Below are positions 4,423-51,839 of a DNA stretch of 64,000 nt, piece by piece. The stretch is from Paramoeba atlantica. Its lineage: Eukaryota > Protista > Discosea. Where the stretch lies: assembly GCA_977017575.1 (NCBI GenBank), contig CDRNVI010000020.1, forward strand, positions 372,001 through 436,000, written 5' to 3'. The notes beneath the pieces are model-generated. The model had not been told where the DNA came from. It saw only the letters and a program-made list of their open reading frames with translations, and did no database searches. The translations under genes and the position numbers were made by a program. Within the stretch, counting starts at the first letter, position 1. Each line of letters opens with the position of its first letter.

Positions 4423-4586
4423 CATACCAAGATCTGGACCGCACAACCTGAAACACTATGGATATTGTGTTTCGGATGGGTAAACATGAATAGCCAAACA
4501 TGTCGTATGCGCGTACGGGATCATACATGTATTTTGTGTGATCTCAGGCTATTTGACTTAATGTCTACAGTTTAACTGTATGAATC
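4423..4586 (+). mobile_element. 3' end of RLE retrotransposon family B (continuation of 2150-2347)
   Basis: Matches reverse complement of ~30207-30370 (GAATAGCCAAACA.GTCGTATGC..GTACGGGATCATA...GCTATTTGACTTAAT.TCTACAGT.TAACTGTATGAATCC). Confidence 0.75.
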
Positions 4587-4744
4587 CTTCTTCAAGAAGA
4601 CTAAAAAAGTTTTTTTTGCTTTTCATGTCGTTCATCCCAAAAAGAAGTATCAAAAAAAATGTATCTTTAGTATATTATCTGATCTATCGTGCAAATTATC
4701 TTTCTTGTAGAGTTGCTTATCACCACTACAAGTTCATCACTTTT

Positions 4745-13368: not shown

Positions 13369-16300
13369 ATGGAAACCCCAGACCCTACATCTTCCCCTGT
13401 CGAATCTTCTTCCCCGACCCCCGACTCCTCTCTGCGGCTGCCTCCCCCTTTTTGCTTTCACAACCTTATTGATATCTCACCCTCCCTACTCGAGGCTCTC
13501 CCGCTTCCTTGCTTTGAATTTCCGGATCGTTTTCTCTTTTCGAGTTCCCCACGTGTACAAAGTTACGAAGACAGTGAAAGCCCAGAGGCGACTAAAGGCC
13601 GTGTCCTTCACCCCCCAAACTTACGTGAAATACTCGCCCCGGGGTTGTACGATACTTTTTTTGGATTACAGGAAGAACAACCATTTGAGAACGAGGAAAC
13701 AACAAGAGTCAAAGTTGAGTCATCTCTGCAACACGAAAAAAATGAATCTTCCTTTGCAAAAGATAATCTGCCGTACTCTGGAACAGACGCCAAACACGCA
13801 AACTTGAATGTTAATACAAGTACAGAGCCCGATGTGTTTCCTGAGACCGATACCCCACGAGTTACCAACTGGCTACCACGAGAGTGTGACGGGTCGCTTC
13901 CCTCCGAGCCCGACCTCTCGGATCGTATTCTCCAATCCTACAAGCAGTCCTGTATTACGCATCTGCAGCTGAACTCCGAGGCCCCGTTTCGAGAGGAGTC
14001 ACTGAACCCTGAAGGCGCTGCGTGGCTGAATGAGGACTCGCTGATCAGTCGGATGGCCCGGCAAGTCGTGCAGCTCGCAAACCCGGGAATCATAAATGAG
14101 AATAAAGAAAAGGAAAAGGCTTCGTCCGTTGTCGGCTCTGCGAAAACCCGTGAGCGTCTGGCATCCGCCCAGCCGGTTCCTCTTCAAATGAGGAGCCGAG
14201 AAACGGTCTCGCAGTTAGGAAACATTTCGGTACTGGCCGGGAAGGTTGACATGTCACTGCCCGAGGACGTTGCAAGCTCTTCTTCGGTGTCGTTATCGAA
14301 GAAAAAAGAAGGTGGGGCGTTTTTAAATATGGGAAGAGTGGACTCAAGTATGGAGGCGACGCAAAGTCCACCAGAGCTTAAAGAGGAAGAGATTGCGCAA
14401 ACAATTTCGACTGCAGAAAGAGAAAAACAATCCCAGGGGATTCGAAAATGTGATTTGACTTTAAAGGACGAAAAATTGGATCTGGTGACCGAATCTAGAG
14501 TATCGTTGGTTCAGAAAAATGTTTTACGTGGGGAGGGAGTAGGTTCACGTACGAGGGCAAAATGTGCCCAGAAAGAGGACACCGCGCGTGGCATGGTTTC
14601 GAAAACTGACGCGGTTTCGGAAACTATGCTTGCGGCTACGGATTCTTGTGTGTCTGACTTGAGTTTGCAAATTAGAGAGCAAAAGACAAAGGAAAAAATA
14701 AAGTCTGAACTGAGTGCGAAGAGACAGCGTCCGGCGCGGAAACCTGAGAAAATATTTGATCCAGTGAAGGAATTGTGCGAGACTGTGCCTGCTGTCGATT
14801 TTTTATGCAATGACTTGGGATCTTGGAGGACGTGGCTGGCTGTCTTCACCGACCTGTACAAGGACAAGTATCCTCTTCGCACCACACTTGAGTGTTTCCT
14901 TTATGTCTCAGAAAAAACTAGAGATCGAGTAAATGGTCTCACTTTCGAAAGATCGCATGAAGTATTATCTCTCTTTGCATGTCCCTCATCGAGAGAAAAT
15001 CAGGTCAATGTCTTAAATTTCTCAAAAAACGCCATCAAATCGATAAATGCATTCACACAATGCACAAATTTAGTAACGTTACACTCATCCTCAAAAAATG
15101 GGTTCGAAGAATGGATAGCACATCTGCTCAATGCTTTTCGTATCGGCGTCCTAAGTGCACTATGGACAGTACCCATGGAAACGTTTGATCGCAAAGCGCC
15201 TACTTTTGAAAACCCTCAAAAAGATTTAAAGGAGCTATCCAGCGACCAATATGTCTCTCTCCATGACTTTCATGCCTTATCCATGTCTTTGGAGCTATTG
15301 GATTCTGTGATGAACCTTCTTAGCAGCGTTGTACGAGGCTTCACAAAACTTGCACGTGAAGTGGCTTGCGACGTGTTTCCTGTTCAAACCACAAATCGCA
15401 GAAAGGCGAAAGAGCGGAACTGTCCTCCTGAGAAGAATGATGGTTCCCTCAAAAACTTTCTTGGTTGCTTGTCGGACGTCCTCTCTACCATTTTTCGTAA
15501 CTTTATTCGTGTCTTACGTTGGACACGCTGTCCGTTGCTCCAAGAAATTGAAAGGAGAGAGCAGTTGGCTAATTTTGCCCTTCAAACGTTATGTATACCG
15601 ATCAACAGCATCACGTCGCATGTGAGTCCAGCGGTAGCTTTGCTACATAGCTTATGTATACCACGCGTAATGATTTACAATAGCACGACTATGGCCTGTG
15701 AAGTATCTGCGCGATTGCAAGAGGGCACAACATCTGATCTTTGCGATTTTCTTCGCTATCAGGTTTTAAATAGTATGACTCGTGCTGTTGATCTCGACAA
15801 TTACTTGCATCTTCCAATCGAGGGCAAAAATATTACCATTTTTAGCTCACTGGTTCAACTGCTTCTCCTCTCACAGCCCTCTGACTCCACAGGGCTGCAC
15901 GAAACAATGGCAAGAATATCGCAATCGCTTTGTACTCACGTTCTCTCTTCCTTTGGTATACTTGAGGCGGTGAAACCCATCGACAATGCCGCAAATCCTG
16001 AGTTTAAGGAGAGAAAAACACGTAAGGCTAAACCTTCACGTCCAGCTCGATCCGAGCGTATTGTTCAAGAAGATCCCGCAGTACTCCAAAAATGGTTTGA
16101 TCACCTTTTAGAGGACGCCTTGTTTTGTGCCACTCTTCCCCAATATCCTCACGCTGCTCCCTTCGTCATGCATCTAACCAATTACATTTTGGCTCACTGC
16201 GTACGTCCACTCTTGCAAGAGGATCATCAAGAACGTGCAGCGAATTTTGTTCCTTTCGAAAACTTAACTTCTGCCCAGCGTGACAAAATTTTATATTGGG

Positions 16301-19300
16301 GGCTTCACACACTGACGCAAATTTTGCGTTGGTCAACGATACATTCCAAATATTTTGAAGAAAAGGCTATTCTACCCCCTCATGTTCCTTTTCACAAAAC
16401 GGTCGATCCCTCGGGGAATGGAATCGAAATCTCACAAAGCACGTCCAGTGCACTAACTCAAGTTCTTGATCGGCTCTACGACGACTGGTTTCGTACTCCT
16501 ACTAAACTTCTAGATCTGGTTGAAACGTCCACAAAATCGGTAAGAAAAAAGAAACATGGAAAAGTTATGAAAAATGGCCCGACTACCCCTCTCCTGGACC
16601 CAAACTCTACCAAGGACTACCCCGAAGAGACTCATCGCGCGAGATGTCTACTCTTCCGATCTCTACAATCCGAATTAATTGAGAATCCCGAAAATGCCAC
16701 AGCCATCCTCGCGGCTCTCTCCACCCTCACACACGAGTGGGAAACGAACGAACGCAAACGCGCCTCCGAAAGCGAAACAAAAAATGAAATATTGGACTTT
16801 GCGCAACACACCGCAGCGGCTGAGTTTTACCACAGTGTATTGCATCGTGAACTCCGCAACTCACTCGACCGCGGGGGATCGGCCTCCTGTATAGCGTTAC
16901 CTCCGGAGTTCTGGCTTTGTCTGCCTCATATCTCGATCGAAATCAAAAAGAGCTTCTCTCGAAGCTCTTCGTCTTTTCTACCTCCCCCTAGTCGTCTCGA
17001 TTCGCTACGAGGGATGGTGCTTTATTTAATTTTTACTACTAAAGCCCAAACGCAAAATGTTTTCTCCCATTCTTTTACTCAGCGTTTGGTCTATGCGCTC
17101 CTGAGTGCATTTCTCCATCCCAGGTGCGGGGCTTCACTTCGTAAAAAAGTGGTCGGGTTACTGAAAAGTTATTTCACGGTTGACTCCTCAGCGTTTCGTA
17201 CGCTTTGGCCTTCATTGCTCCGGGCACTGCGGGATGACAGTGCGATTGTTCGAGAAGCCGTGCTTCAATTGCTTCCGCTCTGTGTTCGCTTTTTTGCACA
17301 GCACACGGAGAAAATGTATGGCTCGCTTTTGAAGAGTGTGCTTGAGGCCGTCGGGGACTCGAGTGAGCTGGTGGCGAAACGAGCGCTCGGGGTGCTTCAG
17401 AATTTATTGGAAGAGGGAAAACGGAAGCAGGTGGCAGGGATGTACCGCATTCGATTTCATGTGCTCTGTGAGTTGTTGAAAAAGACTTCCTGGATGGAGG
17501 CCGATAAAGTGAAAATACATCGGAGTGTCGCGGAGACAATTTGGAGTGTTCTGTTTTCCGAAACCGACCCTAAGGCGCTTGGTGGAAAGGACAACGATTT
17601 GTCTGAAAGATCGGGTAGTAAGCATGAGGACAGATCAACACATTTACATGTCCGTTCCCGCGGCGCAGACGAAGCGTTAAAGACGACATGGGACCAAGCA
17701 CTGTCCTTGTTCATACACCTGGTCTGTGCAGATTCGCCTGATCCTCCCTTTGAACAGGTCGCAACCGAATCGAGTTTTCTTTTTCAAGCTCTCGCATGCA
17801 TTCTTGGTGAGGAGTCTGAGACCTCTCTGGTTTCAAACTACACTTCCGAAGACAAAGACACATCAACTAACAAACAGAATACACGTACTCAAGCCAAAAG
17901 TGCAACAGTCCGACAATCTCGAGAGCACCATGTACAGCAACTTGTGACTCGACTCCTAGCGCTTCTTCGCGATCTCCACAACCCTACCCCTACAATGACT
18001 TCCCACCCAAACCTCCTCCCGAGCACCTGCCCCAAAGGAAGTCTCATGGCCTCTCTCCATCTCCTGCTTACTCTGGTTCCGCACGCCCTTAAACCGGCTC
18101 ACTTCTCCTCGCTCTGCAGCTACCTTTCCTGTACAGAAAAAAACAGTGCAACTTCCCCACAAGCTTCTCGTCCAAGCACCGACGAGGTGGTGGTGTTTAT
18201 TCACACCTGTGGGGCTGTAAAAGCGGTGATTACTTCTCTTAAAGTGCGTCGTTTAGACTCCACAAAATCATCTCTGCAAAATCACGCCTCTCTTAACCGT
18301 TGGGAGAGTCTCTCTACTCTAGTCTACAACCCACTCTCTCGAGTACTCTCCCGACACGTTGGTGATTTTCCCCAACGTGTGTTAATCCAGTGTATTGACA
18401 CACTCTGTGGGTTACTGCCCTCGGAGACGCTCTACGCCTCGGTCGATTCCTCTACAATGGCAGAGAGGCTTGAAAAAGGGTACTTGCCTGCTCTACAGGC
18501 GGTGTATGGGATATACAATCAATACTACGTTCGGCTAAGTACGGTGTCTCAAAAATGGACGCAGGCGAGCGTACAGAGCACAAACCATAAAAGCACGGGG
18601 TCAAATTCTCTACCTGATGGCACGGATCACAACGTTGCGTTTGTCCTTCGGTTTTTATTCATTCTCTCTCAATTTCTGCGCCGGTTTCCTCCCTGTTTTT
18701 CGTCTCTTAAGCCGAGTCTCCTCTCAAGAGATTCGGACAACGCGTCTCTTTGTCGAGGAGCGGGGATTTACCACAATCTCTACACCCTGTTTCGTACGCT
18801 GATGTCACACGTCGAGGCAAACGAAAATAACGCTAAAGGAAAACTCCTGCCGGTGTTATTACGCGCCTTCGGGTCGTTGTGCATTGCACGACCCGTGGAC
18901 TACCTCCCCTTATGTGAAACCGTCTTACGGCAATCCCTCTCGCTGGAATCCACCCACGAAACCCTCTCCCCTGAGGAACGCACCGCACTCCAACGTCAAG
19001 CCCTATGGTTTATCCATGACTTTTTAATCGAGGAAGAAAAATGTATCGAAGCCGCGGTACGAAACGAAATTCGACGCGATCGTGAAAAACAACAACAAAA
19101 CCAAAACCAAAAAATAAACCAAACGAACAACCCACAAAAAATACCCTCTTCCCCACAAACCCCAAAAGAAACGCACAACCCTAAAACCCAAACCTCTCGA
19201 ACCGCCACAACCCCCTTCCTACCCCCCCTGAGCCCCAACCCCCCCGAATCCCCCCTCCCCCGCCGCTCCTCCCAACCCGACCGCTCCAGCGGCATGACCC

Positions 19301-20694
19301 TCTGGCTCATCCAGCGGTTCCATCCCGAGATCGTGGCCCTCTGCGTCTCCCCCCTCTCCCCCTCCCCTCTTCGGGCCTTAGCCCTTCGTCTCCTCCTCAC
19401 CGTGCTGCGCCAGTCCGTCGTCGCCCCGCACTGGTTCCTTCCCCCACTGCTGCTCGCCGGCAGCGAAAGCGCTGAGGCCGTGAGGGCCTGGCAGGGGCTC
19501 TGGGAGAACGATGCCGCGAGTGTGGTCTCCCAGGCCCCGGGGGTCGTGCTGGCCTCATATGGGTACTGGAGGCACAGCCAGGAGGGACAGGGGGGGGTCG
19601 ACGGCAGCGAAAGGGCAGAGGTTACGGGGTATTGCATGTATGAGGAGGGCAGCAGCGGGGAGAGGGTGGCGCCCAGGAGTCGACACGCGGCGCTGTATGG
19701 GGCGTTGCGGAAAGGACAGAGACGACGGGAGGGGTTTCTGCGGTCGGTGGTTCATGGCCTTGGGGGTGAAAAAATGCTCGGGGTTCTGTTTTCGGGTAAA
19801 GAGAGGAAGGAAATGGGGATGGAAGAGGTTTTGGAATTTGCACGCGCCCAGAGTGTGGTGACACAAACCCTTGCGTTTCTTCCGTACCGCGTGGAGGAGG
19901 AGGTGATGTTTGTGTTGGAGTGCTGCACCTCGGAGGTTACGCTGCTGGATCCGGAGGATCTTCAAGTGCAGCTTCAGGTACCGAAGAAGAGGAAGACAGG
20001 GAGGAAACCCGCGCTAAGAGGGAAACGTTCTCGCGGGAGCGTTTCGGATTCCGAACCTGACGGGGATGAGTTGCAACTTGCGATGGAACAGGTGCGTCAT
20101 TCCGTTACCGCATTACTTCTGTTGTCCATGAAAAGATTTCTTCGTAAGGAGTACAGGTTTACGGCGCACAAATTGAGTAAGTATGCCAACGGTCAAGGCA
20201 CGCCTCGAGTAGCGTTGTGTGTCCGAGATCCGGGAATTCCGCCAAGGTCTCCGGTTTCTGTATTCTTACAAGAAATGAAAGCCATTCAAGAAGTGATTCG
20301 AACGTCTATTACTAACACTTTTAGGGTGGGGAATCGGCTAGAGAAACGTATTGAATCTGGACTGACCAGTGATGGTTTGCTTCGCGAGCAAACAAGTATT
20401 TGTTTGGACGATATACGTCAGGCATTCGTTCCTCTTCTCCAATCAGCACTAGAAAAAGACATTACGATCGCTTTCTCGACATCGTACGTCTCTCCCGAAG
20501 CGAATTCAGAACATGAAGGGATGAGTCCGGAGCAAAGGAATCAACGTAATCACAGAAGTATACCAAACAGGAAACGGAGTGTCCAAAACAGAAGAATTGG
20601 GAACAATCAAAAAAAGGAAATCGAAAGCACTGATACTTCAAGTGCTAGTGAATCAATTTCTTTTTTGGATTCTGATTCTTCCGAGGATTGCTAA
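13369..20694 (+). CDS. SCC2: Cohesin loader Scc2/Nipped-B-like HEAT-repeat protein
   Basis: LRDDSAIVREAVLQLL and KRALGVL (cohesin-HEAT-like), SG...LIQRF..EI, FLPYRVEEEVMFVL and LLLLSMKRFLRKEYRFT..KL.KY (Nipped-B C-terminal-like); 2441 aa. Confidence 0.75.
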   Translation: METPDPTSSPVESSSPTPDSSLRLPPPFCFHNLIDISPSLLEALPLPCFEFPDRFLFSSSPRVQSYEDSESPEATKGRVLHPPNLREILAPGLYDTFFGLQEEQPFENEETTRVKVESSLQHEKNESSFAKDNLPYSGTDAKHANLNVNTSTEPDVFPETDTPRVTNWLPRECDGSLPSEPDLSDRILQSYKQSCITHLQLNSEAPFREESLNPEGAAWLNEDSLISRMARQVVQLANPGIINENKEKEKASSVVGSAKTRERLASAQPVPLQMRSRETVSQLGNISVLAGKVDMSLPEDVASSSSVSLSKKKEGGAFLNMGRVDSSMEATQSPPELKEEEIAQTISTAEREKQSQGIRKCDLTLKDEKLDLVTESRVSLVQKNVLRGEGVGSRTRAKCAQKEDTARGMVSKTDAVSETMLAATDSCVSDLSLQIREQKTKEKIKSELSAKRQRPARKPEKIFDPVKELCETVPAVDFLCNDLGSWRTWLAVFTDLYKDKYPLRTTLECFLYVSEKTRDRVNGLTFERSHEVLSLFACPSSRENQVNVLNFSKNAIKSINAFTQCTNLVTLHSSSKNGFEEWIAHLLNAFRIGVLSALWTVPMETFDRKAPTFENPQKDLKELSSDQYVSLHDFHALSMSLELLDSVMNLLSSVVRGFTKLAREVACDVFPVQTTNRRKAKERNCPPEKNDGSLKNFLGCLSDVLSTIFRNFIRVLRWTRCPLLQEIERREQLANFALQTLCIPINSITSHVSPAVALLHSLCIPRVMIYNSTTMACEVSARLQEGTTSDLCDFLRYQVLNSMTRAVDLDNYLHLPIEGKNITIFSSLVQLLLLSQPSDSTGLHETMARISQSLCTHVLSSFGILEAVKPIDNAANPEFKERKTRKAKPSRPARSERIVQEDPAVLQKWFDHLLEDALFCATLPQYPHAAPFVMHLTNYILAHCVRPLLQEDHQERAANFVPFENLTSAQRDKILYWGLHTLTQILRWSTIHSKYFEEKAILPPHVPFHKTVDPSGNGIEISQSTSSALTQVLDRLYDDWFRTPTKLLDLVETSTKSVRKKKHGKVMKNGPTTPLLDPNSTKDYPEETHRARCLLFRSLQSELIENPENATAILAALSTLTHEWETNERKRASESETKNEILDFAQHTAAAEFYHSVLHRELRNSLDRGGSASCIALPPEFWLCLPHISIEIKKSFSRSSSSFLPPPSRLDSLRGMVLYLIFTTKAQTQNVFSHSFTQRLVYALLSAFLHPRCGASLRKKVVGLLKSYFTVDSSAFRTLWPSLLRALRDDSAIVREAVLQLLPLCVRFFAQHTEKMYGSLLKSVLEAVGDSSELVAKRALGVLQNLLEEGKRKQVAGMYRIRFHVLCELLKKTSWMEADKVKIHRSVAETIWSVLFSETDPKALGGKDNDLSERSGSKHEDRSTHLHVRSRGADEALKTTWDQALSLFIHLVCADSPDPPFEQVATESSFLFQALACILGEESETSLVSNYTSEDKDTSTNKQNTRTQAKSATVRQSREHHVQQLVTRLLALLRDLHNPTPTMTSHPNLLPSTCPKGSLMASLHLLLTLVPHALKPAHFSSLCSYLSCTEKNSATSPQASRPSTDEVVVFIHTCGAVKAVITSLKVRRLDSTKSSLQNHASLNRWESLSTLVYNPLSRVLSRHVGDFPQRVLIQCIDTLCGLLPSETLYASVDSSTMAERLEKGYLPALQAVYGIYNQYYVRLSTVSQKWTQASVQSTNHKSTGSNSLPDGTDHNVAFVLRFLFILSQFLRRFPPCFSSLKPSLLSRDSDNASLCRGAGIYHNLYTLFRTLMSHVEANENNAKGKLLPVLLRAFGSLCIARPVDYLPLCETVLRQSLSLESTHETLSPEERTALQRQALWFIHDFLIEEEKCIEAAVRNEIRRDREKQQQNQNQKINQTNNPQKIPSSPQTPKETHNPKTQTSRTATTPFLPPLSPNPPESPLPRRSSQPDRSSGMTLWLIQRFHPEIVALCVSPLSPSPLRALALRLLLTVLRQSVVAPHWFLPPLLLAGSESAEAVRAWQGLWENDAASVVSQAPGVVLASYGYWRHSQEGQGGVDGSERAEVTGYCMYEEGSSGERVAPRSRHAALYGALRKGQRRREGFLRSVVHGLGGEKMLGVLFSGKERKEMGMEEVLEFARAQSVVTQTLAFLPYRVEEEVMFVLECCTSEVTLLDPEDLQVQLQVPKKRKTGRKPALRGKRSRGSVSDSEPDGDELQLAMEQVRHSVTALLLLSMKRFLRKEYRFTAHKLSKYANGQGTPRVALCVRDPGIPPRSPVSVFLQEMKAIQEVIRTSITNTFRVGNRLEKRIESGLTSDGLLREQTSICLDDIRQAFVPLLQSALEKDITIAFSTSYVSPEANSEHEGMSPEQRNQRNHRSIPNRKRSVQNRRIGNNQKKEIESTDTSSASESISFLDSDSSEDC

Positions 20695-25362: not shown

Positions 25363-25415
25363 ATAAAGATACAGTTTCTTTCACTGTATAAAGATACAGT
25401 TTCTGTACCTTGTTG
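25363..25415 (+). other. Tandem spliced-leader-like fragments (partial 25363-25379; 28-mer 25388-25415)
   Basis: ATAAAGATACAGTTTCTGTACCTTGTTG carries the kinetoplastid SL core ACAGTTTCTGTAC and ends TTG; 23-bp direct repeat with 25-bp period. Confidence 0.75.
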
Positions 25416-28400
25416 TTTTTTTTTCTAAACTGTATCTCCAACATGTCCGACAATCCCACTTCTCCGCGGAATGTTGACGATGCGCTGCCTGACCTCCCTC
25501 GAGCTTCCGGCGGCGTACAGACGCAAACCCTGCACTTCGTCCACAGCAGATCACGGCCCGTTAAGATACGACGCCTCACTGATCTGCATTGGACGTATTT
25601 CCCGGACATTAAGACCGCGAGCCAATGGTCCATAGTCAGACAAAGAATTCCATCCCGACAAGGTGCGGAAGTAGCTATCACGAAACTGCTGAGTAAGTGT
25701 GCATCAGCACACGATCTCGTAGCTGAACACACCACCTTTGAGGAGCTCGTGGAGCATAACGCGTGCGACTATATAAAGGTTACGAGGAATGAACACCCCT
25801 ACACCATCTCCCTGCACCCAAACTGGGTCTCGATGCACACCGACCCTGCCCTCAGCCTGCGAGACAAGTATTCCACCCCAAGCACGCTAAATAAGGCAGC
25901 CCTGAAGGCCATACAGGGAAGAGAAATATCGGGACTGAAGCACATAAAAATCGAGCTCATAAGAAACCAGGAAACACCAAGCACTGAAACCGCGGAATAC
26001 GAGAAGCCGCGCAGGATAGAAGAATCTCCTCATAAAATCGCTCCCCCACGAACGCCAAAGCCCCAGAAGGGTAAAACTGATCAACACAAGGGACCATGCA
26101 AGCACCGCTGCTTGAGCAAACTCTCCTGTGCTCACAAGTGCTGTAAAATCTATGGACCGCTGCCGAGTGAGGACGCTACATATTGCTCATCAGAAGGAGC
26201 ACTGCCACCTGAGATCGTCCCAGAAGGAACCGCAAATAACACCAACCCAGGAGATCCAAGTAAATATACGCCGGAAAGCACCTCTTCGGAACCTGCGACA
26301 CATACAAAATGCAACACACATGCGTCGAACGGTCACCGCAAACCTACCGTACATGATGAACCTTCCGCCCCGCATCCATGTCGTCATTCCTGCAAGAACA
26401 AAGCTACGTGCGGACATCTATGTTGTAAACGAGGCATTAAATCTTCGCATCTGGACTTTCCAATTTCCGCGACTTCCACAAATGAAAATCTACAAACGAA
26501 GCTATGCAACGCAATATCACGGGAGGGCGCTCACACAACTTTAGAACGCGGGTTAAACCCGGCAACACAACCTCCACCTGGTGTCCAAATGGTCCCACCT
26601 GCCGAGGGAACCCAAACAGAGGGGGCCGACGTCAACCAGAACTCCGTAACACCAAACCTCAACGACAACGATAGTGATTTCCTACGGAAAGCTGCTAAAT
26701 TGGCTGGTTGGGCCATGCGTAACGTTATAAACCTCTACCGCCTTCCCAATACTAGCATCAACGGACCAACAAACGGGAACCAACATACTGTGCAAATCAC
26801 GGATGCGACGTGCACTGACAACAAAGATAGCACTATGCACAACCCTGCGCCACTCCCTGACGCGACGCCTAGCAGTGCAGCGCATTACCCACAGAACACC
26901 GTACACATGGAACCATGTCGTCACCGATACTCGGCCAAGCTACGCTGTCTACATAAATGCTGTAAGATATATGGACCGCTTAGGTACAATGAGCCCCTCA
27001 TCCGACCTTCTCCTCTTCCTCCTCCTTCGCACACTACGGAACTTCGAGTTCCATCATGGGATGAAACCAGCGAAAGGGAGCGCCTCCATCTGCTTGAACA
27101 ACACAAAACCATAACAGGAGGAAAAATGTGCCTAAAGCTTAACGACGATCAATGGAAGGCGGTTGAAAACAAGGCATACGATGCATGCCGAAGGCTGCAA
27201 TATCCAATAGTAGACACCCCGGAAATCGCAGTGAAAAACGCAGAACTCCTGGGTGCCTCTCTGGCAGTGGCGGCATACGAAATTGCACAAGAGATTAACC
27301 CCACTAAAGGTTTCCTCACGCGATCGAAACGCGGACACGCCCGATTCAAGCACCGGACACTTTCGTCTGAAAATGCAGCCCACGAAATGACGAAACACAT
27401 ACGCAACCAAAAGAAATCACTACGCTACACACACGGAACGGAACGCCAAGAGCTCCGTCGCTGCATTAAGGAAAGTGAGAAGCTAGAGAAAACATACACA
27501 GAAGAGGCCAAAGCACATAGGAAACAGCTAGAAAGACAATGGGCCCATAGCAGATTCACGCGGAACCCGTGGACAGCAGCATCCGAGGCCTTGGACCGCC
27601 CCTCGACCTCCGCCACCGCCGAATATCCTGAATGCGATTTACCTACGATAGAAAAATATTTCACAGAAAGCACAGCACCTCCCGCCGAAGAGCATCGCCT
27701 GCCGCCGAACAACGTACTTGGTCCTCTACCCATCAACGAAATGGAATGGTCTCCACTGACCGCGCAAGATGTCGCAGACGCGCTCAGCAGCAAAAGAAGC
27801 GCAAGCGCGCCAGGGCGTGATACGATTACAAACGCACTTCTAAAACAATGCAAATACCTGTACCCCCGTATAGCGAACACGTTTAATGATCTTCTGCGCT
27901 ACGGCGTCTGCCCGCCATGCTGGTCCTCCGCCGTAGTTAAACTCATTCACAAAAGAGGCCAAAAACACATCCCGAAAAACTGGAGGCCTATCTCCCTGAC
28001 TAGCGCTCTAGGCAAACTTTTCAATAGCATGATCGGACACCAAATTTTGACGCATACCGTGTCCTCCGGCCTCCTAGATACAAGCGTTCAAAAAGGCTTT
28101 CTTCCGAAGATGAGTGGCACACTGGAACACACGCAAGCTCTCTCCGAAATACTACAATACTACCGCCGAAACAAAAGGCAATATTGTCTCACGCAGTTTG
28201 ATCTCAGCAATGCATTCGGCTCGGTCCCCCATAACATCATCTTCGAGGCACTGCGATGGGCAAACGTCTCGCCACAAATCGTGTCCTACGTTGAAAGCAT
28301 GTATTCACATGCGGAAATGCGTATTAAGTGTGTCGAAGGTTTGTCACGTGCTATACCGATACACAGAGGCGTACTACAAGGTGATACCCTGTCGCCCATA

Positions 28401-28867
28401 ATTTTCAACTTAGTGATGGAAACTGTACTACGATACCTCAAGCAATCGTGCCCCCGGTATGGCCTTGACTACCCAGATACTCCAAGGCATTTCCTGAAAG
28501 CCCACGTTGACGACCTGACGATACTGACTAGCAGCGATACCGACATGCAGCACGCGACCAACACACTCGAAACTGCACTGAGACGAATAGGACTCTCAAT
28601 CAACGTAGACAAGAGCCGTACACAGTGCATGTCCATGCGTGAAGGCAGTGAGCACCCGGGTTACATGACCAGGAAGCCGAGACTCAATATCGAAGGCAAA
28701 GCGATACCACATATATGTGACCGTGGAAGCACTTTTCTTGGAATGACCATAGCACCAGGAGCACAGCAAGCGAAAGAACTTTTCAAAAATCTGGATGTCA
28801 GACTAAGAACATGGCTTCGGAATGTCGACGAGAGTGCACACAGTCTCCCCGAAAAACTTTGGATCTA
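25416..28867 (+). mobile_element. RLE-type non-LTR retrotransposon family A, 5' part (3'-truncated)
   Basis: 27-nt UTR, then an ORF with RT domains; 28295-28867 is nearly identical to 39720-40292. Confidence 0.9.
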
Positions 28868-28868
28868 G
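25443..28868 (+). CDS. Retrotransposon ORF: three Cys/His motifs + reverse transcriptase (truncated before Zn knuckle/RLE)
   Basis: SAPGRD, WRPISL, QKGFLP.MSG.LEH, DLSNAFGSVPH, GVLQGDTLSP..F, HVDD (YVDD in second copy); stop created at the junction with the SL fragment. Confidence 0.9.
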   Translation: MSDNPTSPRNVDDALPDLPRASGGVQTQTLHFVHSRSRPVKIRRLTDLHWTYFPDIKTASQWSIVRQRIPSRQGAEVAITKLLSKCASAHDLVAEHTTFEELVEHNACDYIKVTRNEHPYTISLHPNWVSMHTDPALSLRDKYSTPSTLNKAALKAIQGREISGLKHIKIELIRNQETPSTETAEYEKPRRIEESPHKIAPPRTPKPQKGKTDQHKGPCKHRCLSKLSCAHKCCKIYGPLPSEDATYCSSEGALPPEIVPEGTANNTNPGDPSKYTPESTSSEPATHTKCNTHASNGHRKPTVHDEPSAPHPCRHSCKNKATCGHLCCKRGIKSSHLDFPISATSTNENLQTKLCNAISREGAHTTLERGLNPATQPPPGVQMVPPAEGTQTEGADVNQNSVTPNLNDNDSDFLRKAAKLAGWAMRNVINLYRLPNTSINGPTNGNQHTVQITDATCTDNKDSTMHNPAPLPDATPSSAAHYPQNTVHMEPCRHRYSAKLRCLHKCCKIYGPLRYNEPLIRPSPLPPPSHTTELRVPSWDETSERERLHLLEQHKTITGGKMCLKLNDDQWKAVENKAYDACRRLQYPIVDTPEIAVKNAELLGASLAVAAYEIAQEINPTKGFLTRSKRGHARFKHRTLSSENAAHEMTKHIRNQKKSLRYTHGTERQELRRCIKESEKLEKTYTEEAKAHRKQLERQWAHSRFTRNPWTAASEALDRPSTSATAEYPECDLPTIEKYFTESTAPPAEEHRLPPNNVLGPLPINEMEWSPLTAQDVADALSSKRSASAPGRDTITNALLKQCKYLYPRIANTFNDLLRYGVCPPCWSSAVVKLIHKRGQKHIPKNWRPISLTSALGKLFNSMIGHQILTHTVSSGLLDTSVQKGFLPKMSGTLEHTQALSEILQYYRRNKRQYCLTQFDLSNAFGSVPHNIIFEALRWANVSPQIVSYVESMYSHAEMRIKCVEGLSRAIPIHRGVLQGDTLSPIIFNLVMETVLRYLKQSCPRYGLDYPDTPRHFLKAHVDDLTILTSSDTDMQHATNTLETALRRIGLSINVDKSRTQCMSMREGSEHPGYMTRKPRLNIEGKAIPHICDRGSTFLGMTIAPGAQQAKELFKNLDVRLRTWLRNVDESAHSLPEKLWI

Positions 28869-28873
28869 ATTGG

Positions 28874-29160
28874 ATAAAGATACAGTTTCTGTACCTTGTT
28901 GTACATTTTCCCTTTAGTTCATCTTTTCTTTCCCCGGCAACGGGCATAATCTTACTGTTTTATATGCCCGTTGCCGGCCGGCACTAAGGCCGAAACTGTC
29001 CCTCTTTCTCGGCGAAGTAGGGGACGCGCTTCCACCCCATCACCCCTCCCCGGCTCACTCCTTGAGTGGGTTTTCTTCCCTCCCCGGCTTTCTTCCCTTC
29101 GCGCCCTTTTCTTCCCGGGGAGCCATGCGCCATGGTGGCCTCCCTTGAGGACCACTGGGC
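28874..29160 (+). ncRNA. SL-headed structured unit (SL RNA-like gene/retrocopy or SL-derived SINE), copy 1
   Basis: Identical SL 28-mer, then a body ~80% similar to the minus-strand copy at 44010-44300; perfect 15-bp hairpin at 28934-28977. No GT directly after the SL 3' end (TTG|TAC). Confidence 0.55.
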
Positions 29161-29195
29161 GTGGCTCTGCCTCGTCTTATCGCGAGGCAGCGGTC

Positions 29196-29347
29196 GGTTG
29201 CAGTGCGCCCCTCCGGCTGCGTAAAGAGATGGTGAGTTGCCTGGACCACCTCTTCCGACTGGGACCGAGTTGGTTGCAGTGCGCCCCTCCGGCTGCGTAA
29301 AGAGAGGGCGAGTTGCCTGGACCCCCTCTACCGACAGAGTCCGAGCT
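29196..29347. repeat. Two-copy tandem repeat, 76-bp period
   Basis: GGTTGCAGTGCGCCCCTCCGGCTGCGTAAAGAGA.GG.GAGTTGCCTGGACC... at 29196 and 29272. Confidence 0.9.
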
Positions 29348-29598
29348 AAACCCCCTTGGTGCGACATCCGTCAATACGGATTGTGCCGATGATATCGGCT
29401 GTCGCATCAAGGGCTGTATCTCTGCGCCAACGAGCGCATGAACATCAAAACCAACGCACCACTTTTTTTCCTAAAAAATAATTTTCTTGTCATTTCCAGT
29501 GCACCACTTTTTCTTAAAAACTGTATTCTCATTTCCAATGCACCATCAATTATTTAAAGAAGTATTATTTTATATTATCCTTCGGATCTATACTACAA

Positions 29599-29934
29599 AT
29601 GCGCCATTATTCAAGACTCAGTCATTACGATCGTAATCGTATTCAATCACTCTTTACATCTGGCGAGAGTCGGCGAATCATAGCTCGCATAATTGGCAAA
29701 AGTCACAGCACTGTTTGTCGCGAGTTGGCGCGTAATGCAAGAAGGGGTCAGCGCTATGAGGGGAAGAGGGCACAGCGCATTTCGAAAAGACGCCTCTCGT
29801 GTAAAAAGGTCAAGCCTCACAAGATACAAGGCCTTTTGGAAGAGGAAGTCAGCTCTCGACTTCAAAAGAAGCACAGCCCGGAACAGATTGCAAATACGAT
29901 CCGTAGCTGTCGTACCGCCTCGACTTCTACCATA
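29599..29934 (+). mobile_element. IS30-like transposase N-terminal (HTH) fragment
   Basis: Y..LS..DR..I..L...G.S.R.IA..IG+S.STV.REL.RN ... SPEQIA, the IS30 HTH pattern; cut at a TA by a Tc1-like end. Confidence 0.7.
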
Positions 29935-30205
29935 CAGGGGTGCAAATCAGATGCTGGGGGGGGGGTCTAAAATTAGCAATGTTTGCGCAATTTTGGAAAA
30001 TAATAGCGCATTCGAGAGCTCTCGCAGAGATCTATGTTTTGGCGCTATTATCACGTTAAAAGAAAACAAATTTGAAAAAGATATTTTTTTAAAGGTTTTT
30101 TACCCACCTAAAAGTTGCAGATTTTTCAATTTTTGCAGTTTTTTCCGTGTTTTTTTTTGTTTTTCAGCTCACTATTATGCCGCAAAAGCGATCCCTCTCT
30201 AAGGA
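29935..30205 (+). mobile_element. Left end of Tc1/IS630-like element (relative of 60724-62670)
   Basis: TA|CAGGGGTGC terminus, GGGGTCTAAAATT...GGAAAATAATAGCGCATT block, ATGCCGCAAAAGCG start like 60921. Confidence 0.6.
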
Positions 30206-30206
30206 G

Positions 30207-31772
30207 GAGGATTCATACAGTTATACTGTAGAGATTAAGTCAAATAGCTTGGGATCACATAACATATGATCCCGTACAAGCATACGACGTGTTTGGCTAT
30301 TCCTGTTTACTCATCCGAAATACAAACATCCATGGGGTTCCAGTTTGCGCGGTCCCGATTTTGGTATATAGTGAAACTCCCCCTAAATGCTCTCGTCACC
30401 AAGTGTTGGCGACACTCCTTGGCAAGCTTTGTTTCCTCGCAGAAGAGCATATCTAATTTACTCGCCGAGTCTTGGAGACTTCCGCGAGCCCCAATCTCTA
30501 GGGCGAATAGGTATGTTTCGGGATGATTTTCTTTTCGCGTATGCCACAGGTGGTGGTATTTCAGCATTTTCCGCTCGTGCGCGGCCTGCATATTCTCCTC
30601 CCATGGGCAAGTTAGTTCAATAATGAACTCTTTCCCGTCCCTTAGCTTTACCCACCCGTCCGGACGCAGCATACCGTCATTGTCGGCTAGCCACGTTGGA
30701 GGGCGTCGCATGCCAGGTAGGTCGAAATGAGAGAGAGCTGTATGGGGGGACTCGCTTACATGGTAAGCTAGGGCCCGTAAGATGAAGTCGTGTCTGAAAG
30801 TGTAACGCCCTTGATCTAGAGCAACTCAGCATCCCGCGAGAATGTGCCTTGGGGTTTGTACCTCTGTCTTGCATAGCGGGCATTTGATGTCTGTGTGGGT
30901 TGATATGCCCCAGCGGTGAATTGCGGCCCTGGTAGGTAGCGGGGCCTGTGTGAGGACAGAGGAGACAAATCGCGTCAGGTGCGTCGACCTGATGTTTTTC
31001 GAACCTGAAGTCTTTCGCCACGCTTTCCTCCGATGCATCGTTGAACCATCTGGCAGCGATAGGTGCTCTCCGTTATACCGCTTGTGTAAGATGCGCCTCA
31101 TGCTCGGTATTGATTTTACGGCGCATTTCGTTAGAGTCTCCTATTAGGTGGCACAGGTCGGCTGCCGGGCGCACATGCCCGCGTGAACGCTGCCTTTTCT
31201 CGTTCTCAATTTTAATTCGCAATGCGTGCTGCACCGCCGGATCCCGAGAAGCATTCATTTGATTTAGGTTTTGGGCTGTGCAGTGTAGCCACAATTTGGA
31301 CAGGCTCATGAGGGCCCAACCACGTTCAGAGTAAAGGAGCTCACTCGTTGAGGCTTTAGCGAGATTTAGCCACTTTCGGATGTGCCGGGTCGCTAGTTTC
31401 TGCTGTCGAAGCATATGAGTAAAAGAAAGTCCGGGGTTGATTGTTAGTACATAGCGCAAGCGAGCAATGATGACGTGATTGTATATCCAAAGCTTAGCGG
31501 ATGGGTCGTGAGCGCTCTCAGAGATTCTGCTCAACCAACCTGATAGTTTCGCCTTAACAGTTTGAAAGGTAATTTTGCCTTGTTGTGCGCCGGGTGCCAG
31601 TGTCATGCCCAAAAACATACTTCCTTTATCGCATATGTGAGGAATAGGCGTGCCTTTGGCCATAATCTGCGGGCGTCTGGTCATATATCCACTGCCTGTT
31701 GCCACGGACATGTGCTGAACTCTGCATTTCCCAATGTTCAGTGTCAGCCCCAATCTCGAAAGTGCTGTTGCT
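30207..31772 (-). mobile_element. RLE-type non-LTR retrotransposon family B, 5'-truncated and degenerate
   Basis: RT thumb (GLTLNIGKC..KLWIYN), CPLC..Q TPRHILAGC*, QGRYTFRHD, LRPDG..EFIIELTCPWEEN...HERK..KY; one frameshift and one in-frame TGA. Confidence 0.85.
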
Positions 31773-39106: not shown

Positions 39107-41790
39107 ATGAGTACGAATATGATATCCTTAGTGTATTATCTGTGTTGCACAGCTGATGTGTCAAATGTCGATGCAACACGTAGACTTCCCAGTAGGGTGC
39201 GAGGAACGAATAACCACAAGAATATGAGCTCGCACGATTTGCCGCTGATATTGAGAACCCAGACCCATCGTGGAATACATCAACGCCAGCATGTGAGTGG
39301 AAAGGTGTGGATTGTGATGGACAACAAGTAACGAACATTATTTGGGAAACATTCGGCATATTTGGGAGTAATCGACTGAAAGGATCACTGCAATGGCGTT
39401 ACACATTACGCACGTTACACAAATTTAAAGCATCTTGCAACGATCTTACGGGAAAAGTACTGTTCGATATGTTGCCGGCTGAACTTGATGAGTTTGCCAT
39501 AAACTGTAACCAATTTTCAGGCTCTTTGGAATTCCACCATTTACCACAAAACATGGAGGAACTTATCCTGTGTAACAACTTTTTTCAGGGGAATATAGAT
39601 TTAACCTGCCTGGGGAATCATATTTTCCTCTTATTAATGTCGGACACCAATTTATCCGGTGAAATCGACCTCACCAGTCTACCGCGATCTATGATTAACA
39701 TAGATGAGAACATACATAGAAGCATGTATTCACATGCGGAAATGCGTATTAAGTGTGTCGAAGGTTTGTCACGTGCTATACCGATACACAGAGGCGTACT
39801 ACAAGGTGATACCCTGTCGCCCATAATTTTCAACTTAGTGATGGAAACTGTACTACGATACCTCAAGCAATCGTGCCCCCGGTATGGCCTTGACTACCCA
39901 GATACTCCAAGGCATTTCCTGAAAGCCTACGTTGACGACCTGACGATACTGACTAGCAGCGATACCGACATGCAGCACGCGACCAACACACTCGAAACTG
40001 CACTGAGACGAATAGGACTCTCAATCAACGTAGACAAGAGCCGTACACAGTGCATGTCCATGCGTGAAGGCAGTGAGCACCCGGGGTACATGACCAGGAA
40101 GCCGAGACTCAGTATCGAAGGCAAAGCGATACCACATATATGTGACCGTGGAAGCACTTTTCTTGGAATGACCATAGCACCAGGAGCACAGCAAGCGAAA
40201 GAACTTTTCAAAAAGCTGGATGTCAGACTAAGAACATGGCTTCGGAATGTCGACGAGAGTGCACACAGTCTCCCCGAAAAACTTTGGATCTACAACAGAG
40301 CGATCGTATCCCGTCTGCGCTACGCCCTCACCGTTCACCCGTGTGTCACTTTCAACTTTGTATTGCGATTGCAGAAAAGAATTACACGTCACCTTAAGAA
40401 ATGGATCAATGCAGCATCCACGACTTGCACCGAAATTCTTTATACTGAACGAGGGTGGAACCTTAAAAGTTTATCCAAGCTGTGGTCCGAATGCTCTATC
40501 CTAGCCTTAACACAGATGCACAAGTGGCGGGACCCATCGATACAGGCGGCACTACGAGCCCGAATCAAGCAAGAAGAAGAAAAACGATCCTCTGGTTATA
40601 TTCGTCCAAGCGCTGACGCCATTCAACACCTTCATGACGCGCGGAAGGCGCAACAGATAGCCCGTGATCACCATGAATCTTACGTCATAAATCAGCTTCA
40701 GAGACGGGCACCGACAGCAGCAAAATAGTGGAGCCTCCCCTCCGAGGCTGATCTCGCGAAAGAGTTCTCAGCGGCCCTGAACAACCTCAACAGTGAAAAA
40801 CTTTCTCGCTTCGCAGCTTCAGTACTAACGCTTTCACCCCTACCATCCAGAACCAATCTTCGGCTTTGGGGTCTCCGGCGTGCGAGTGTAACATGTCCCA
40901 TATGTAAACTCGAACCTCAAACAACAAGGCACGTGCTCTCGGGGTGCAAAGAGTCCCTTCAGCAAGGGAGATATACCCTCCGTCATGACATGTTACTTGA
41001 AGAGCTCGGAAAACACTTGCTGCGTTCGCCGTATACCAAGAGCGTACACCTAGATATCCCCGGATTTAGGAATGCCCCGGCATGGCTCGGCACCCGTGAG
41101 GACCTTCTTCGCCCCGACGGTTTGATTACACTTAAGGATGGAAGTGAGTTCATCATTGAGCTCACTGTGCCCTGGGAAGAGAACCAGTCTCAGGCGCACG
41201 AGGGCAAATCCCGTAAATATAATGCTCTCTTCCATGAACGACGCATTAATCACCCTAGGACGACCCTTGTTGTATTCGAAGTGGGAGCCCGCGGCTCGTT
41301 ACTCACATCTTGTCGAAACCTCAATCTCCTCTTTGACGAGGACACAAAGCTTGCGGAAAAATGTCGAGAAAGTCTAATGCAGACCGCCCTTCGAGGCAGT
41401 TTCATTATCTGGCAGAACCGCGAGTCTGCCGTTTGGACAGAAGGACGGGTATAACGTCTGTAAAAGATAGGTCTGGGCAGCGTCATATGCGCCCCCCAGG
41501 CCTATCCGCATATTCTCTGCCTTATAAAGGTATGATAAATTAAACTATCATACAACAAGTTTACAGGACCACTTAATTTACAACACTTACCTTTCGAACT
41601 TGATGCTCTCGACTGTTCTAATAATCAGTTTTCCGGATTGGTGCGATTTGATAACCTTCCACCACGATTGTCATGGTTTTGCCTTGACAATAACTCGGAG
41701 CTTTACGGTAATGTCAACGATTTCACTTTACCTGATAAACTGCAAGCCCTTAGCGTAGATGGTACGAAAATAATTCCGAAAGAGAAATGA
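39107..41790 (+). pseudogene. LRR pseudogene, frameshifted near 39210 and interrupted by retrotransposon A (39706-41544)
   Basis: SRVRG..PQEYELARF split by a frameshift. Removing the insert rejoins ..LPRSMINID|LSYNKFTG.. in frame to TGA 41788-41790. Confidence 0.8.
39706..41544 (+). mobile_element. RLE-type retrotransposon family A, 5'-truncated copy with intact 3' end
   Basis: YVDD, CPIC..TTRHVLSGC, QGRYTLRHD, LRPDG...IIELTVPWEEN...K..KY. Single in-frame TAG at 40726; 14 extra nt at the 5' junction; 3' UTR hairpin GATAGGTCTGGG/CCCAGGCCTATC; no poly(A) or TSD seen. Confidence 0.9.
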
Positions 41791-42561: not shown

Positions 42562-42667
42562 TTGGGCGTTGGGGGGGGGATATAAGCTCCCCCCCAACGC
42601 CCTTAGTTGGGGGGGGGATATATCGAGGGTAGAGCGGTAGTTATACAACCACCGCACTTTTCTTTTT

Positions 42668-42766
42668 TAGGCTCTTCGTTAAACGCGGTGGTTGTTTTCA
42701 ACTTAGAAGTCACTCATGCTGCGCGCTTCGCGTTGAAAACTAACACCGCGTTTAACGAAGAGCCTA
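42668..42766. mobile_element. Palindromic ~100-bp MITE (TA|GGCTCTTCG...CGAAGAGCC|TA); other copies 45471-45571 and partial 32226-32309
   Basis: ~36-bp inverted arms around a ~29-bp spacer; opposite orientations at 42.7 and 45.5 kb. Confidence 0.8.
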
Positions 42767-43239
42767 AAAAAGAAATTCGGCCTGGAAAGCTAAAGAAAAC
42801 ACAAAGATTACGAACCATGCGCTCCACCCGGAAAAATGGTGTCGGATTTTTCCAGAAAAAAGGAAATCTATCGTGGTCGCAAGCGCGATGGGGTTTGCAC
42901 AAGGACAAACATGTCGAGATGCAAGAAAAATTAACGAACTCCTCCTTGGCGAACTGGGCGGGATGAAAGCCAGCGTGGACATGCGCCTGCTGCAGCAAAA
43001 GCGAATATACATCGTTTCAAAAACTTTCCCATAAAGCTTCTAATGGTAGATCGTCCCGACACGTATTCACTACAGCGTAGCATACAGCGTATGTTGACTA
43101 TGTGCAAGAAGAACACGGAAGCAAACATTGTGCCCTGCATGTTTGGAGATTAGATGATTGATTTTTAGCTAGAATAATAGAAAACCAGCGCCGTGAAGTG
43201 GTGCATTTCTTTTCTTTTTCCTTTTTTAAAAACAATTGT

Positions 43240-43341: not shown

Positions 43342-43819
43342 GGGGGGGGGGGGTGACAGTACTTCTATAGTAAACCACCGGATCCCCCCTTTATATTTTT
43401 TTCTTTAGTAAACCACATACCCGTTTAACATACCTATACCTTGGATAACATACCGGTGGGTATGTTATTCTGGCCCACGACACTTAACATACCCCCCCCC
43501 CTCGTCCCACGGCTTTTATTGTGCAACTGTACCAAAATCCAACCGTAATATCACTTACGTTTTTAACAAGATGTTTCCTGTATGCGTTTTTAAACGTATT
43601 TTGATAACATCTTAGCATTTAGTACTACGCGCGGTATATCTTTAGATACAGGTTCTAACAGTGAAAGTGATTTTCTTCTCTTTCCTATTTCATTACCAGT
43701 CTACTTAACATACCTATATTTGTTTATTCAAGCACTTAGATTGCAGAGATTTGTCTCACATTGTCCTTACCCGCATACGACGGGTGGATCACGTGAGGAT
43801 TTGCCCTCGCTGGAGGAGA

Positions 43820-43990
43820 ATGGGTGCAGAGAGCTGACGTCCCAGGTGCAGAGAGCTCGGTTGTCATGTGCAGGTGCAGAGAGCCGGATGCGTAATCCCC
43901 ATATTACAGTTTCGGGGGCAATCCGGGTGCAGAGAGCTGCGACAGAGCCGAGGTGCGGAGAGCTGGGCGACCGTCACGTGCGGAGAGCCG
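43820..43990. repeat. GTGC(A/G)GAGAGC motif x6, irregularly spaced
   Basis: Seen directly, immediately 3' (on the minus strand) of the SL-headed body. Confidence 0.8.
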
Positions 43991-44009
43991 TAAACGCGGG
44001 CAGCGAGGG

Positions 44010-44300
44010 ACGCGTCTAGTGGTCCTCAAGTGAGGCCACCGTGACGCCTAGCCCTCTCGGAGAGGTACGGGTCGGGAGGAAAGAATCCGAGAGGGAGAAG
44101 AATTCACTCCAGGGGAGTGAGTCGGGGAGGGGCGAAGGGATGAAGGCGCGTCCCCTTCTTCAGCGATAAAGGGGGACAGTTCCAGCCTTAGCGCCGACCG
44201 GCAACGGGCATGAAAATACAGCAAGAGTATGCCCATTGCGGGGGAAAGAAAGGATGAACTAAGGTTAAGTACCAACAAGGTACAGAAACTGTATGTTTAA
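44010..44300 (-). ncRNA. SL-headed structured unit (SL RNA-like gene), copy 2, with GT donor
   Basis: Minus strand reads TTAAACATACAGTTTCTGTACCTTGTTG|GTAC (26/28 match to the SL fragment, GT at 44272-44271), followed by the body homologous to 28902-29160. Confidence 0.6.
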
Positions 44301-45300: not shown

Positions 45301-45652
45301 CGTTCAGTAGGCTTTCGTTCACGCCTACGAGTGCTTTCCCGCACGCAAATGTCGGATTTAGCCCTCTGAGAGCAAAAATACGCAAAAATCACCCCATTTT
45401 TGCCCGAAAATCGGCTAATTTTGGCTGTAATCTTTGTGTTTTCTTTAGCTTTCCAGGCCGAATTTCTTTTTTAGGCTCTTCGTTAAACGCGGTGGTAGTT
45501 TTCAACGCGAAGCTCGCAGCATGAGTGACTTCTAAGTTGAAAACAACCACCGCGTTTAACGAAGAGCCTAAATAGGTTAATAAAATACTTTTAACTACTT
45601 TTTTGAAAGTTTTAAACTTTCCGTAAACTCTGAATTTTTTCGTCTCCTTTAC

Positions 45653-51291: not shown

Positions 51292-51319
51292 ATAAAGATA
51301 TGGTTTCTGTACCTTGTTG
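51292..51319 (+). other. Spliced-leader-like 28-mer heading a short UTR and ATG 51357
   Basis: ATAAAGATATGGTTTCTGTACCTTGTTG, 26/28 match; preceded by TAACG. Confidence 0.65.
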
Positions 51320-51356
51320 ACTTATTTTGTCCTTTCCTTCTTTAATCTCTCCCCCC

Positions 51357-51839
51357 ATGGCAGAACTCCCCCTCAAGGGTCTATTGTTCTGTGCATACTG
51401 TGGCTCGGAGTTCGAACCACCCTCCCCCTCCCACCGGCTGTGCCCGACGTGTGCACACATACATGCGTTTTTTACATGTGTTTCGTACATTAAAACATTA
51501 AAAAAAGTATCATTCACCCCAAACTGTATTTTTCAGCAAAATGGGGCAACACCTCACACTGCGAAGGAAACAGAAGCGTACCTTGACGACAACAAAATGA
51601 AATTATTGAAAAATTGGCCGCCTAACTCCCCCGATCTCTCACCAATAGAAAACGTGTGGAGCATGGTACAAAGTCTTGTAGATGAATACAATCCGACAAA
51701 TAAAGAAGATCTCATAAAAAGCGTACGTAAAGCTTGGCGTAAATTGTCTCAAGGTTATATTTATGATTCGGTTTTGAGCTTCGATGCTCGCCTCAAAGCT
51801 TGTGTGGCGAGTAACGGAGAAAAGGTGACAAAATGGTAA
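51357..51839 (+). pseudogene. Chimeric ORF: CxxC-CxxC Zn ribbon fused to Tc1 DDE C-terminus
   Basis: CAYC...CPTC, then FQQNGATPH (second catalytic D replaced by N) and WPPNSPDLSPIENVW. Confidence 0.6.

Follow-up and report, generated by a model that had tools for sequence, protein, structure and literature searches.

Two units of about 290 bp, one on the minus strand at 44010-44300 and one on the plus strand at 28874-29160 of the 64,000-nt stretch of DNA analysed here (hereafter the window), begin with the 3' part of a spliced leader (SL) exon and continue into similar bodies. They raise the question whether such SL-headed units are solitary, divergent SL RNA genes or copies of a mobile element, the two possibilities offered by a preceding sequence-only reading of the same DNA. 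As described below, both units are copies of a 575-615-bp, ORF-less retroposon family in a 45.7-Mb kinetoplastid-type genome. The family is real and multi-copy and consists of non-autonomous retroposons, not of variants of the SL RNA gene. We consider it highly probable that these units, which fall into the subfamilies A-old, A-young, B and C, are short non-coding non-LTR retroposons copied and inserted in trans by an R2/HERO-like RT+RLE LINE of the same genome.

Copy number, limits and subfamilies

The abundance of the family was assessed by DNA searches and exact-pattern counts over the whole assembly. The 291-nt query yielded 351 candidates with 40 scored matches at 83-100% identity. With a full B element 547 candidates were obtained and with a full C element 340, in either case with 40 near-full-length matches that are 93-100% identical to the query. 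At least 108 copies possess an intact head according to the exact-pattern counts, and about 60 family loci were read in sequence. The copy counts include duplicates, for example stretches of contig C63 that are 100% identical to the window. The identical region surrounds copy A (the minus-strand unit) and the 3' end of the LINE introduced below (G000:C63:20050-26194; L001, L045) and includes an identical duplicate of copy A; it is either a haplotig or the product of a segmental duplication of very recent date.

All-against-all comparison of 30 copies gave sharp limits, from -9 to -13 on one side to +566 to +570 on the other side of a TTTCTG core. The 5' end of the family, 9-13 nt before TTTCTG, corresponds to SL nt 11-13, and at the 3' end, 566-570 nt after TTTCTG, the copies close with a small hairpin followed by ATGATAAAACA or ATGAATAAACAA. 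A 5' module of ~290 bp with six hairpins is common to the subfamilies, between which the copies agree in it at 77-83% and its consensus sequences at 77-90%; the 3' halves differ. Within the subfamilies, copies are 91-100% alike in A-old, to which window copy A belongs, 98.5% alike on average in A-young, 99% in B and 89-99% in C. A conserved ORF was not found in the family copies, neither in place nor in strand, and the flanks of the copies are unrelated to one another. The family is therefore short, non-coding, dispersed and multi-copy, as SINEs are. Two metagenome scans, one using a 22-mer from the last hairpin and the other SL+GTAC, were blank, and a literature search for the leader string returned nothing.

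The two copies in the window

The unit on the minus strand (copy A) and that on the plus strand (copy B) align at 79.9% over 289 nt, in agreement with the sequence-only reading, which had described a shared SL head and a body about 80% alike at these two places. The 20-mer core of the SL occurs four times in the window, with 0 occurrences expected.

Copy A is an A-old element of about 580 bp (43720-44299, minus strand; extent from the comparison of 30 copies). Relative to the real exon (L031:852-889) its head represents SL nt 12-38 with one substitution (44273-44299), and it is followed by GTAC at 44269-44272. The six conserved hairpins of the shared 5' module are located between 44018 and 44242, with their arms at 44229-44242/44198-44211, 44193-44197/44182-44186, 44172-44177/44150-44155, 44114-44121/44104-44110, 44087-44095/44052-44060 and 44018-44040. 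The A-type 3' half harbours six scattered copies of a 12-nt motif, GCTCTCYGCACC (43823-43988), which has seven matches in the window against 0.31 expected and which repeats the start of the 3'-terminal motif. The latter (43719-43749) is composed of TCTCTG, a hairpin with one broken stem pair and TGAATAAACAA, all of these features being on the minus strand.

On both sides copy A is flanked by an identical 14-nt direct repeat, TATAGGTATGTTAA. In the search for TSDs a long direct repeat was seen at window copy A only, and it is to be read with caution since the surroundings are repetitive. Copy A sits in a repeat-rich stretch, and the older A copies, window copy A included, are situated outside LRR genes. 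Two inverted repeats of 146 nt (42666-42811 and 45427-45572, 99% complementary) enclose 2.6 kb with copy A, and related pieces of 85 nt are present at 32223 and 45488. These repeats resemble the termini of a DNA transposon or of a foldback element, into which copy A would have inserted.

Copy B belongs to the B subfamily, whose copies are 93-100% identical to it, and occupies 28874-29450 on the plus strand, with the head at 28874-28901, the 5' module extending through 29160, a 2 x 76-bp tandem at 29193-29344 and the terminal motif at 29419-29450. Directly 3' of it, at 29450-30250, short repeated GCACCACTTTTT units are followed by an IS30-like helix-turn-helix/transposase-like reading frame. 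Further upstream the window contains two giant paralogous ORFs of 2455 and 2441 amino acids (4580-11947 and 13369-20694), the first of which has a match to the MATH domain.

At the junction of head and body (marked by a slash) copy A reads TTG/GTAC and copy B TTG/TAC, so that the TTG/GT junction is indeed retained in A and missing in B. The difference is a private loss of 1 nt in copy B; other B copies read TTGGTAC. Two further features of the initial description had to be reworded. The proposed end of homology at a GGTGGCC...CCACT hairpin is correct between A and B, but only as a subfamily boundary, homology within a subfamily running over 575-615 bp. The different minisatellites said to follow each copy are really subfamily-specific 3' halves, of which that of B does contain the 2 x 76 bp tandem, whereas that of A has no tandem array (TRF) and holds the six scattered 12-nt motifs instead.

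RNA structure and probable constraint of the 5' module

Folding of the whole element gave a z score of -5.2. In the six hairpins of the 5' module 96.8% of the cells pair over 35 copies, compared with 37-50% when the partners are slid, by which the three conserved hairpins noticed at the outset are confirmed and three more are added. Double changes are found in three pairs, namely from C-G to A-U in C and from C-G to U-A and U-A to C-G in B/C. The covariation of the module is modest, comprising these three pairs and about two or three events, and the covariation term of RNAalifold is small. Between the subfamily consensus sequences the stems differ by 9-14% and the unpaired positions by 22-29% (p = 0.001-0.009), i.e. 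stems change 2-2.5 times less than unpaired positions. The slower change of the stems and the three double-changed pairs lend moderate support to the proposed RNA-level selection.

Rfam returned no match at gathering score in the whole window and none with E up to 10 for the element, ARAGORN predicted 0 genes in it, and neither a promoter nor a ribozyme was found (Rfam blank). An HDV-like fold was also sought by eye, and the first 7 nt have no complement at the expected position of the P1 strand; hence no ribozyme is claimed. In public runs, which were available as contigs only, run X5, guessed to be RNA, covers just the SL head. Runs X1 and X4 have a depth in the SL bin 15-100 times that of the body, a pattern that may be RNA-like.

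The presumed partner LINE, the shared tail and the insertion site

The window contains two copies of an RT retrotransposon. Copy 1 (25388-28867, plus strand; Pfam RVT_1, E = 7e-31) starts with SL nt 11-38 at 25388-25415, followed by an ORF at 25443-28868 with the RVT_1 domain, both on the plus strand. Its break point was derived from comparison with copy 2, of which the 3' part is present at 39720-41545 (plus strand), comprising the end of the RT, a CCHC/RLE-like region and the true 3' end. The 107 protein matches of the RT include R2 and fish pol-like proteins and none that is named SLACS or CZAR. The LINE of the window is an R2/HERO-like RT+RLE retrotransposon. Its copy 1 breaks off 3' at 28867, and beyond 6 unassigned nt copy B of the short element begins; the missing 3' part of 1.25 kb is absent elsewhere in the window. 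The junction 28867/28874 can be read either as a template-switch chimera or as nested insertions with loss.

The LINE ends with TCTCTG, a CCTT/AAGG hairpin and TATGATAAA (41514-41545, plus strand), a motif that is common to the short elements. In its general form this 3'-terminal signal, TCTCTG followed by a 5-bp hairpin and (C/T)ATGA, is shared by the LINE and all subfamilies. At pair 14/23 of the terminal hairpin the A elements have A-U, the LINE has C-G and B/C have G-C; at pair 15/22 the LINE has U-A and the short elements have C-G. Pairing in this hairpin amounts to 91.7%, compared with 17-50% with the partners slid. A 3' tail in common with a partner LINE, as expected of SINEs, is thus present and is backed by two compensatory pairs, although it covers only about 30 nt.

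LINE and short elements also agree in the place of insertion. The 5' flanks of both encode LPxxLxxL, and the 3' flanks of both start at the Leu codon of LxxNxFxG in sense orientation. The strict LRR motif is found at the 3' flank in 9 of 39 insertions, as opposed to 0.36% of random places. The non-autonomous elements are consequently found in the same register as their presumed autonomous partner. The lack of a conserved ORF, the shared compensated 3' hairpin and the shared LRR register together argue for the proposal that the units are SINE-like elements mobilised by RLE retrotransposons, and such mobilisation would take place in trans by the LINE protein.

Elements of this kind usually originate in R2 and ingi/L1Tc as internally deleted derivatives of an autonomous element (PMC3414825, PMC5814959). 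Applied to the present family, this origin, like that of R2 SIDEs, RIME or NARTc, would call for an autonomous LINE in which the 290-nt module serves as 5' UTR and the 3' halves of the subfamilies serve as 3' UTR, and the 28-nt head and the terminal motif are in fact colinear with the LINE ends. In SIDEs and RIME, however, both ends are colinear with the autonomous element over a substantial length, whereas here nothing beyond the 28-nt head and the ~30-nt tail corresponds. Neither the 5' UTR of the LINE, a T-run and then 25 nt before the ATG, nor the last 250 nt of the LINE has anything further in common with the short elements (local alignment z about 0-6, terminal motif only), whose body is not part of the LINE. 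Moreover, none of the 120 best matches is longer than about 615 bp. We therefore judge an origin by internal deletion to be improbable.

Origin of the SL-derived head

The family copies open with the last 26-28 nt of the SL exon followed by GTAC. Exact matches to SL nt 16-38 + GTAC number 108 genome-wide, those to nt 11-38 + GTAC 70 and those to nt 9-38 + GTAC 11, with about 4 expected by chance. Taking all SL heads of the genome together, 619 reach nt 11 and 432 reach nt 6. Outside the family, 549 SL-headed sites extend to nt 11, and about 421 of these continue as far as nt 6 (Fisher p = 2e-23 versus the family), and the head boundary at nt 11 is therefore specific to the family. As no head-less locus with an AG acceptor before GTAC and the body exists in the assembly, the family-specific boundary leads us to read the head as inherited element sequence, which would descend from an RNA that was once trans-spliced. 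The designation 'SL-derived' is hence appropriate for the 28-nt head and not for the 260-nt body, for which no source was detected.

The boundary is not entirely uniform. One C copy reaches nt 4, and the heads of the LINE range from nt 7 to nt 17, which indicates that some re-acquisition of the SL or template switching occurs as well. At L029:1488-1520, SL nt 27-38 are joined directly at ACAG/TTTCTG of the element's own head, and at L011 the SL is joined after CCTTAG of the body. Both loci fit trans-splicing of family transcripts at internal AGs prior to retro-copying.

The few copies with longer heads and the SL joined at element-internal AGs are also what might be expected if one or a few host genes encoded a structured trans-spliced RNA and the units were its processed retro-copies, the SL being added to the RNA each time and the cDNA usually stopping near nt 11. 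Against such a master gene, the assembly, as stated above, holds no head-less locus with an AG before GTAC and the body. In addition, the family is split into four subfamilies that differ in their 3' halves and have each had a recent burst of their own, and other SL-headed retro-copies have a far less sharp boundary at nt 11. Repeated derivation from host genes is consequently quite improbable, and inheritance of the head along with the element is preferred.

The head boundary coincides with the insertion point of SLACS/CZAR, which interrupt the 39-nt exon between nt 11 and 12 and leave 28 nt of it on the 3' side (PMC5814959). We record this as a coincidence and not as evidence of descent. It is conceivable, albeit unlikely, that the head is not merely a relic and that its position reflects the leader cut of the CRE clade. 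The ancestors of the LRR-homing LINE and of its riders could in this case have homed to SL genes, and the downstream half of that former target could have been kept as a functional 5' end. Together with the six-hairpin module this end might define the RNA 5' end or release it from LRR co-transcripts, acting as a promoter or as a self-cleaving device of a new type.

Relation to the SL RNA genes

Exact-pattern searches of the whole 45.7-Mb assembly located the real SL RNA gene on contigs C11, C3 and C24, where it lies in tandem units that each contain a 5S rRNA gene as well (Rfam, 99 bits). The real exon has a length of 38 nt (L031:852-889) and is preceded by at least 70 conserved nt; the intron starts with GTATGAG and ends in a long hairpin followed by a T-run. 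In some array units two SL genes are located 297 bp apart. A retro-copy of a whole unspliced SL RNA is present at L033:1480-1620 (G000:C6:25500-28500, minus strand), where the exon from nt 4 and the complete intron up to the terminal hairpin are followed by an A-run and a short tandem repeat. A further SL head in the window (51292-51839; nt 6-38 with two mismatches) is followed by a short UTR and an ORF whose tail matches Tc1/DDE_3 transposase; here another RNA was retro-copied together with an SL head.

Solitary divergent SL RNA genes supplying a variant leader could explain that the 3' end of the exon and the GT are kept in most copies, a GT donor directly following the exon sequence in 108 copies (TTG/GTAC; lost in window copy B), and that a 5-bp hairpin spans the junction as it does in real SL RNA. 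The remaining parts of an SL RNA gene are, however, missing or different. The family copies lack nt 1-10 and with them a complete exon including the capped 5' end. They possess neither the conserved 70-nt upstream region nor the tandem, here 5S-linked, arrangement. Instead of a short intron ending in a T-run, as in a whole RNA of about 100-140 nt, they are units of about 580 bp with subfamily homology over 575-615 bp and a LINE-type tail. The real intron has only GTA in common with the family body, and intron and conserved upstream region are unrelated to the body and flanks of the family. Finally, units are found inside LRR reading frames. This half of the initial proposal is therefore abandoned, its probability being negligible.

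Equally minimal is the probability that the family body is merely the spacer of a canonical SL array, a condition under which the initial reading was to be discarded: SL/5S units on C11 and C24 do hold stretches of 150 + 40 + 90 nt that are 83-88% identical to body and tail of the B type, but the matching piece runs opposite to the SL gene, starts only at body position 54 (5' truncation), has no head, includes the tail of the element and borders on a (GA)n run. It is therefore an old insertion that has spread with the array unit. Each SL/5S array unit (L031:1190-1700 on G000:C11; L034) holds such an old inverted, 5'-truncated B-like family copy beside a (GA)n run of about 150 nt. As sources of the body, the SL intron and the array spacer were accordingly both rejected.

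Comparison with known retroposons

In order to place the family, it was compared with retroposons of similar organisation. The R2 SIDEs (PMC3414825) are likewise non-coding riders of a site-specific LINE of the RLE type, which keep the 3' RNA signals bound by the LINE protein and insert at the target of the LINE, as the present family presumably does. Both ends of the SIDEs are colinear with R2, the ribozyme of R2 forms the 5' end and the rDNA is the target, whereas the family shares only the 28-nt head and about 30 nt of the tail with its LINE, has a foreign body of 260 nt and no detected ribozyme, and targets the LRR motif. RIME, NARTc and SIDER with Pr77 (PMC5814959, PMC4035085) are kinetoplastid non-autonomous retroposons as well and have a short conserved 5' signature and a 3' end in common with their LINE. 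They differ in belonging to the APE-type ingi/L1Tc clade and in their A-rich tails, and their 5' signature is a promoter/HDV-like ribozyme of 77-79 nt and not SL sequence.

SLACS, CZAR and CRE (PMC5814959, PMC12278014) resemble the family in being tied to the spliced leader and are themselves kinetoplastid LINEs of the RLE type. They reside inside SL RNA genes, between nt 11 and 12, and encode RT and RLE, whereas the family, which occupies LRR genes and other DNA, is non-coding; the sole coincidence is where the head boundary lies. Papers on Bodo saltans mention elements of the CRE clade and no such SL-headed family (PMC4728078, PMC2621209). In flatworms, retroelement loci with a partial leader at the 5' end of the genomic copies were read as integrated trans-spliced transcripts (PMC12582326). 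These are LTR and LINE copies noted in passing, without a non-autonomous family that combines a fixed head, a structured body and a LINE-mimicking tail.

With classical SINEs (PMC5786205) the family has in common the tripartite organisation into head, body and tail, the tail that mimics the partner LINE, the high copy number and the presence of subfamilies. The heads of classical SINEs, however, derive from Pol III RNAs (tRNA, 7SL, 5S) with an internal promoter, whereas that of the family represents 28 nt (SL nt 11-38) of an SL exon that is made by Pol II and whose start is missing here, and neither ARAGORN nor Rfam detects a Pol III-type gene. The family is hence a 'SINE' only in a loose sense. 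The combination of a fixed SL head with a foreign structured body, a hairpin tail that mimics a LINE and homing to an LRR codon is found in none of the systems considered here.

Proposed mobilisation and implications

In the mechanism that we propose, the LINE protein would recognise the shared 3'-terminal signal (TCTCTG, the 5-bp hairpin and ATGA), nick the LRR codon site immediately 5' of the Leu codon in LxxNxFxG and then reverse-transcribe the RNA of the short element. The 28-nt SL head would be a fossil of the founding trans-spliced RNA that is inherited and not added anew in each cycle. The structured 260-nt body, presumably under RNA-level constraint, would likely play a role in the definition of the 5' end, in stability or in the assembly of an RNP, although any function of the 5' module is inferred.

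For annotation it follows from the nature of the family that its copies must not be described as SL RNA genes, nor be counted as evidence of trans-splicing. In a trans-splicing organism, part of the cell's own mRNA leader can apparently become the 5' end that a mobile element passes on to its copies, and the SL-headed element probably rides a site-specific R2-like LINE into a family of protein-coding (LRR) genes. This bears on the origin of non-autonomous retroposons without Pol III heads and on RNA recognition by RLE LINEs, here via a very small compensated hairpin signal, as well as on the breakage and reshuffling of a large surface-type gene family.
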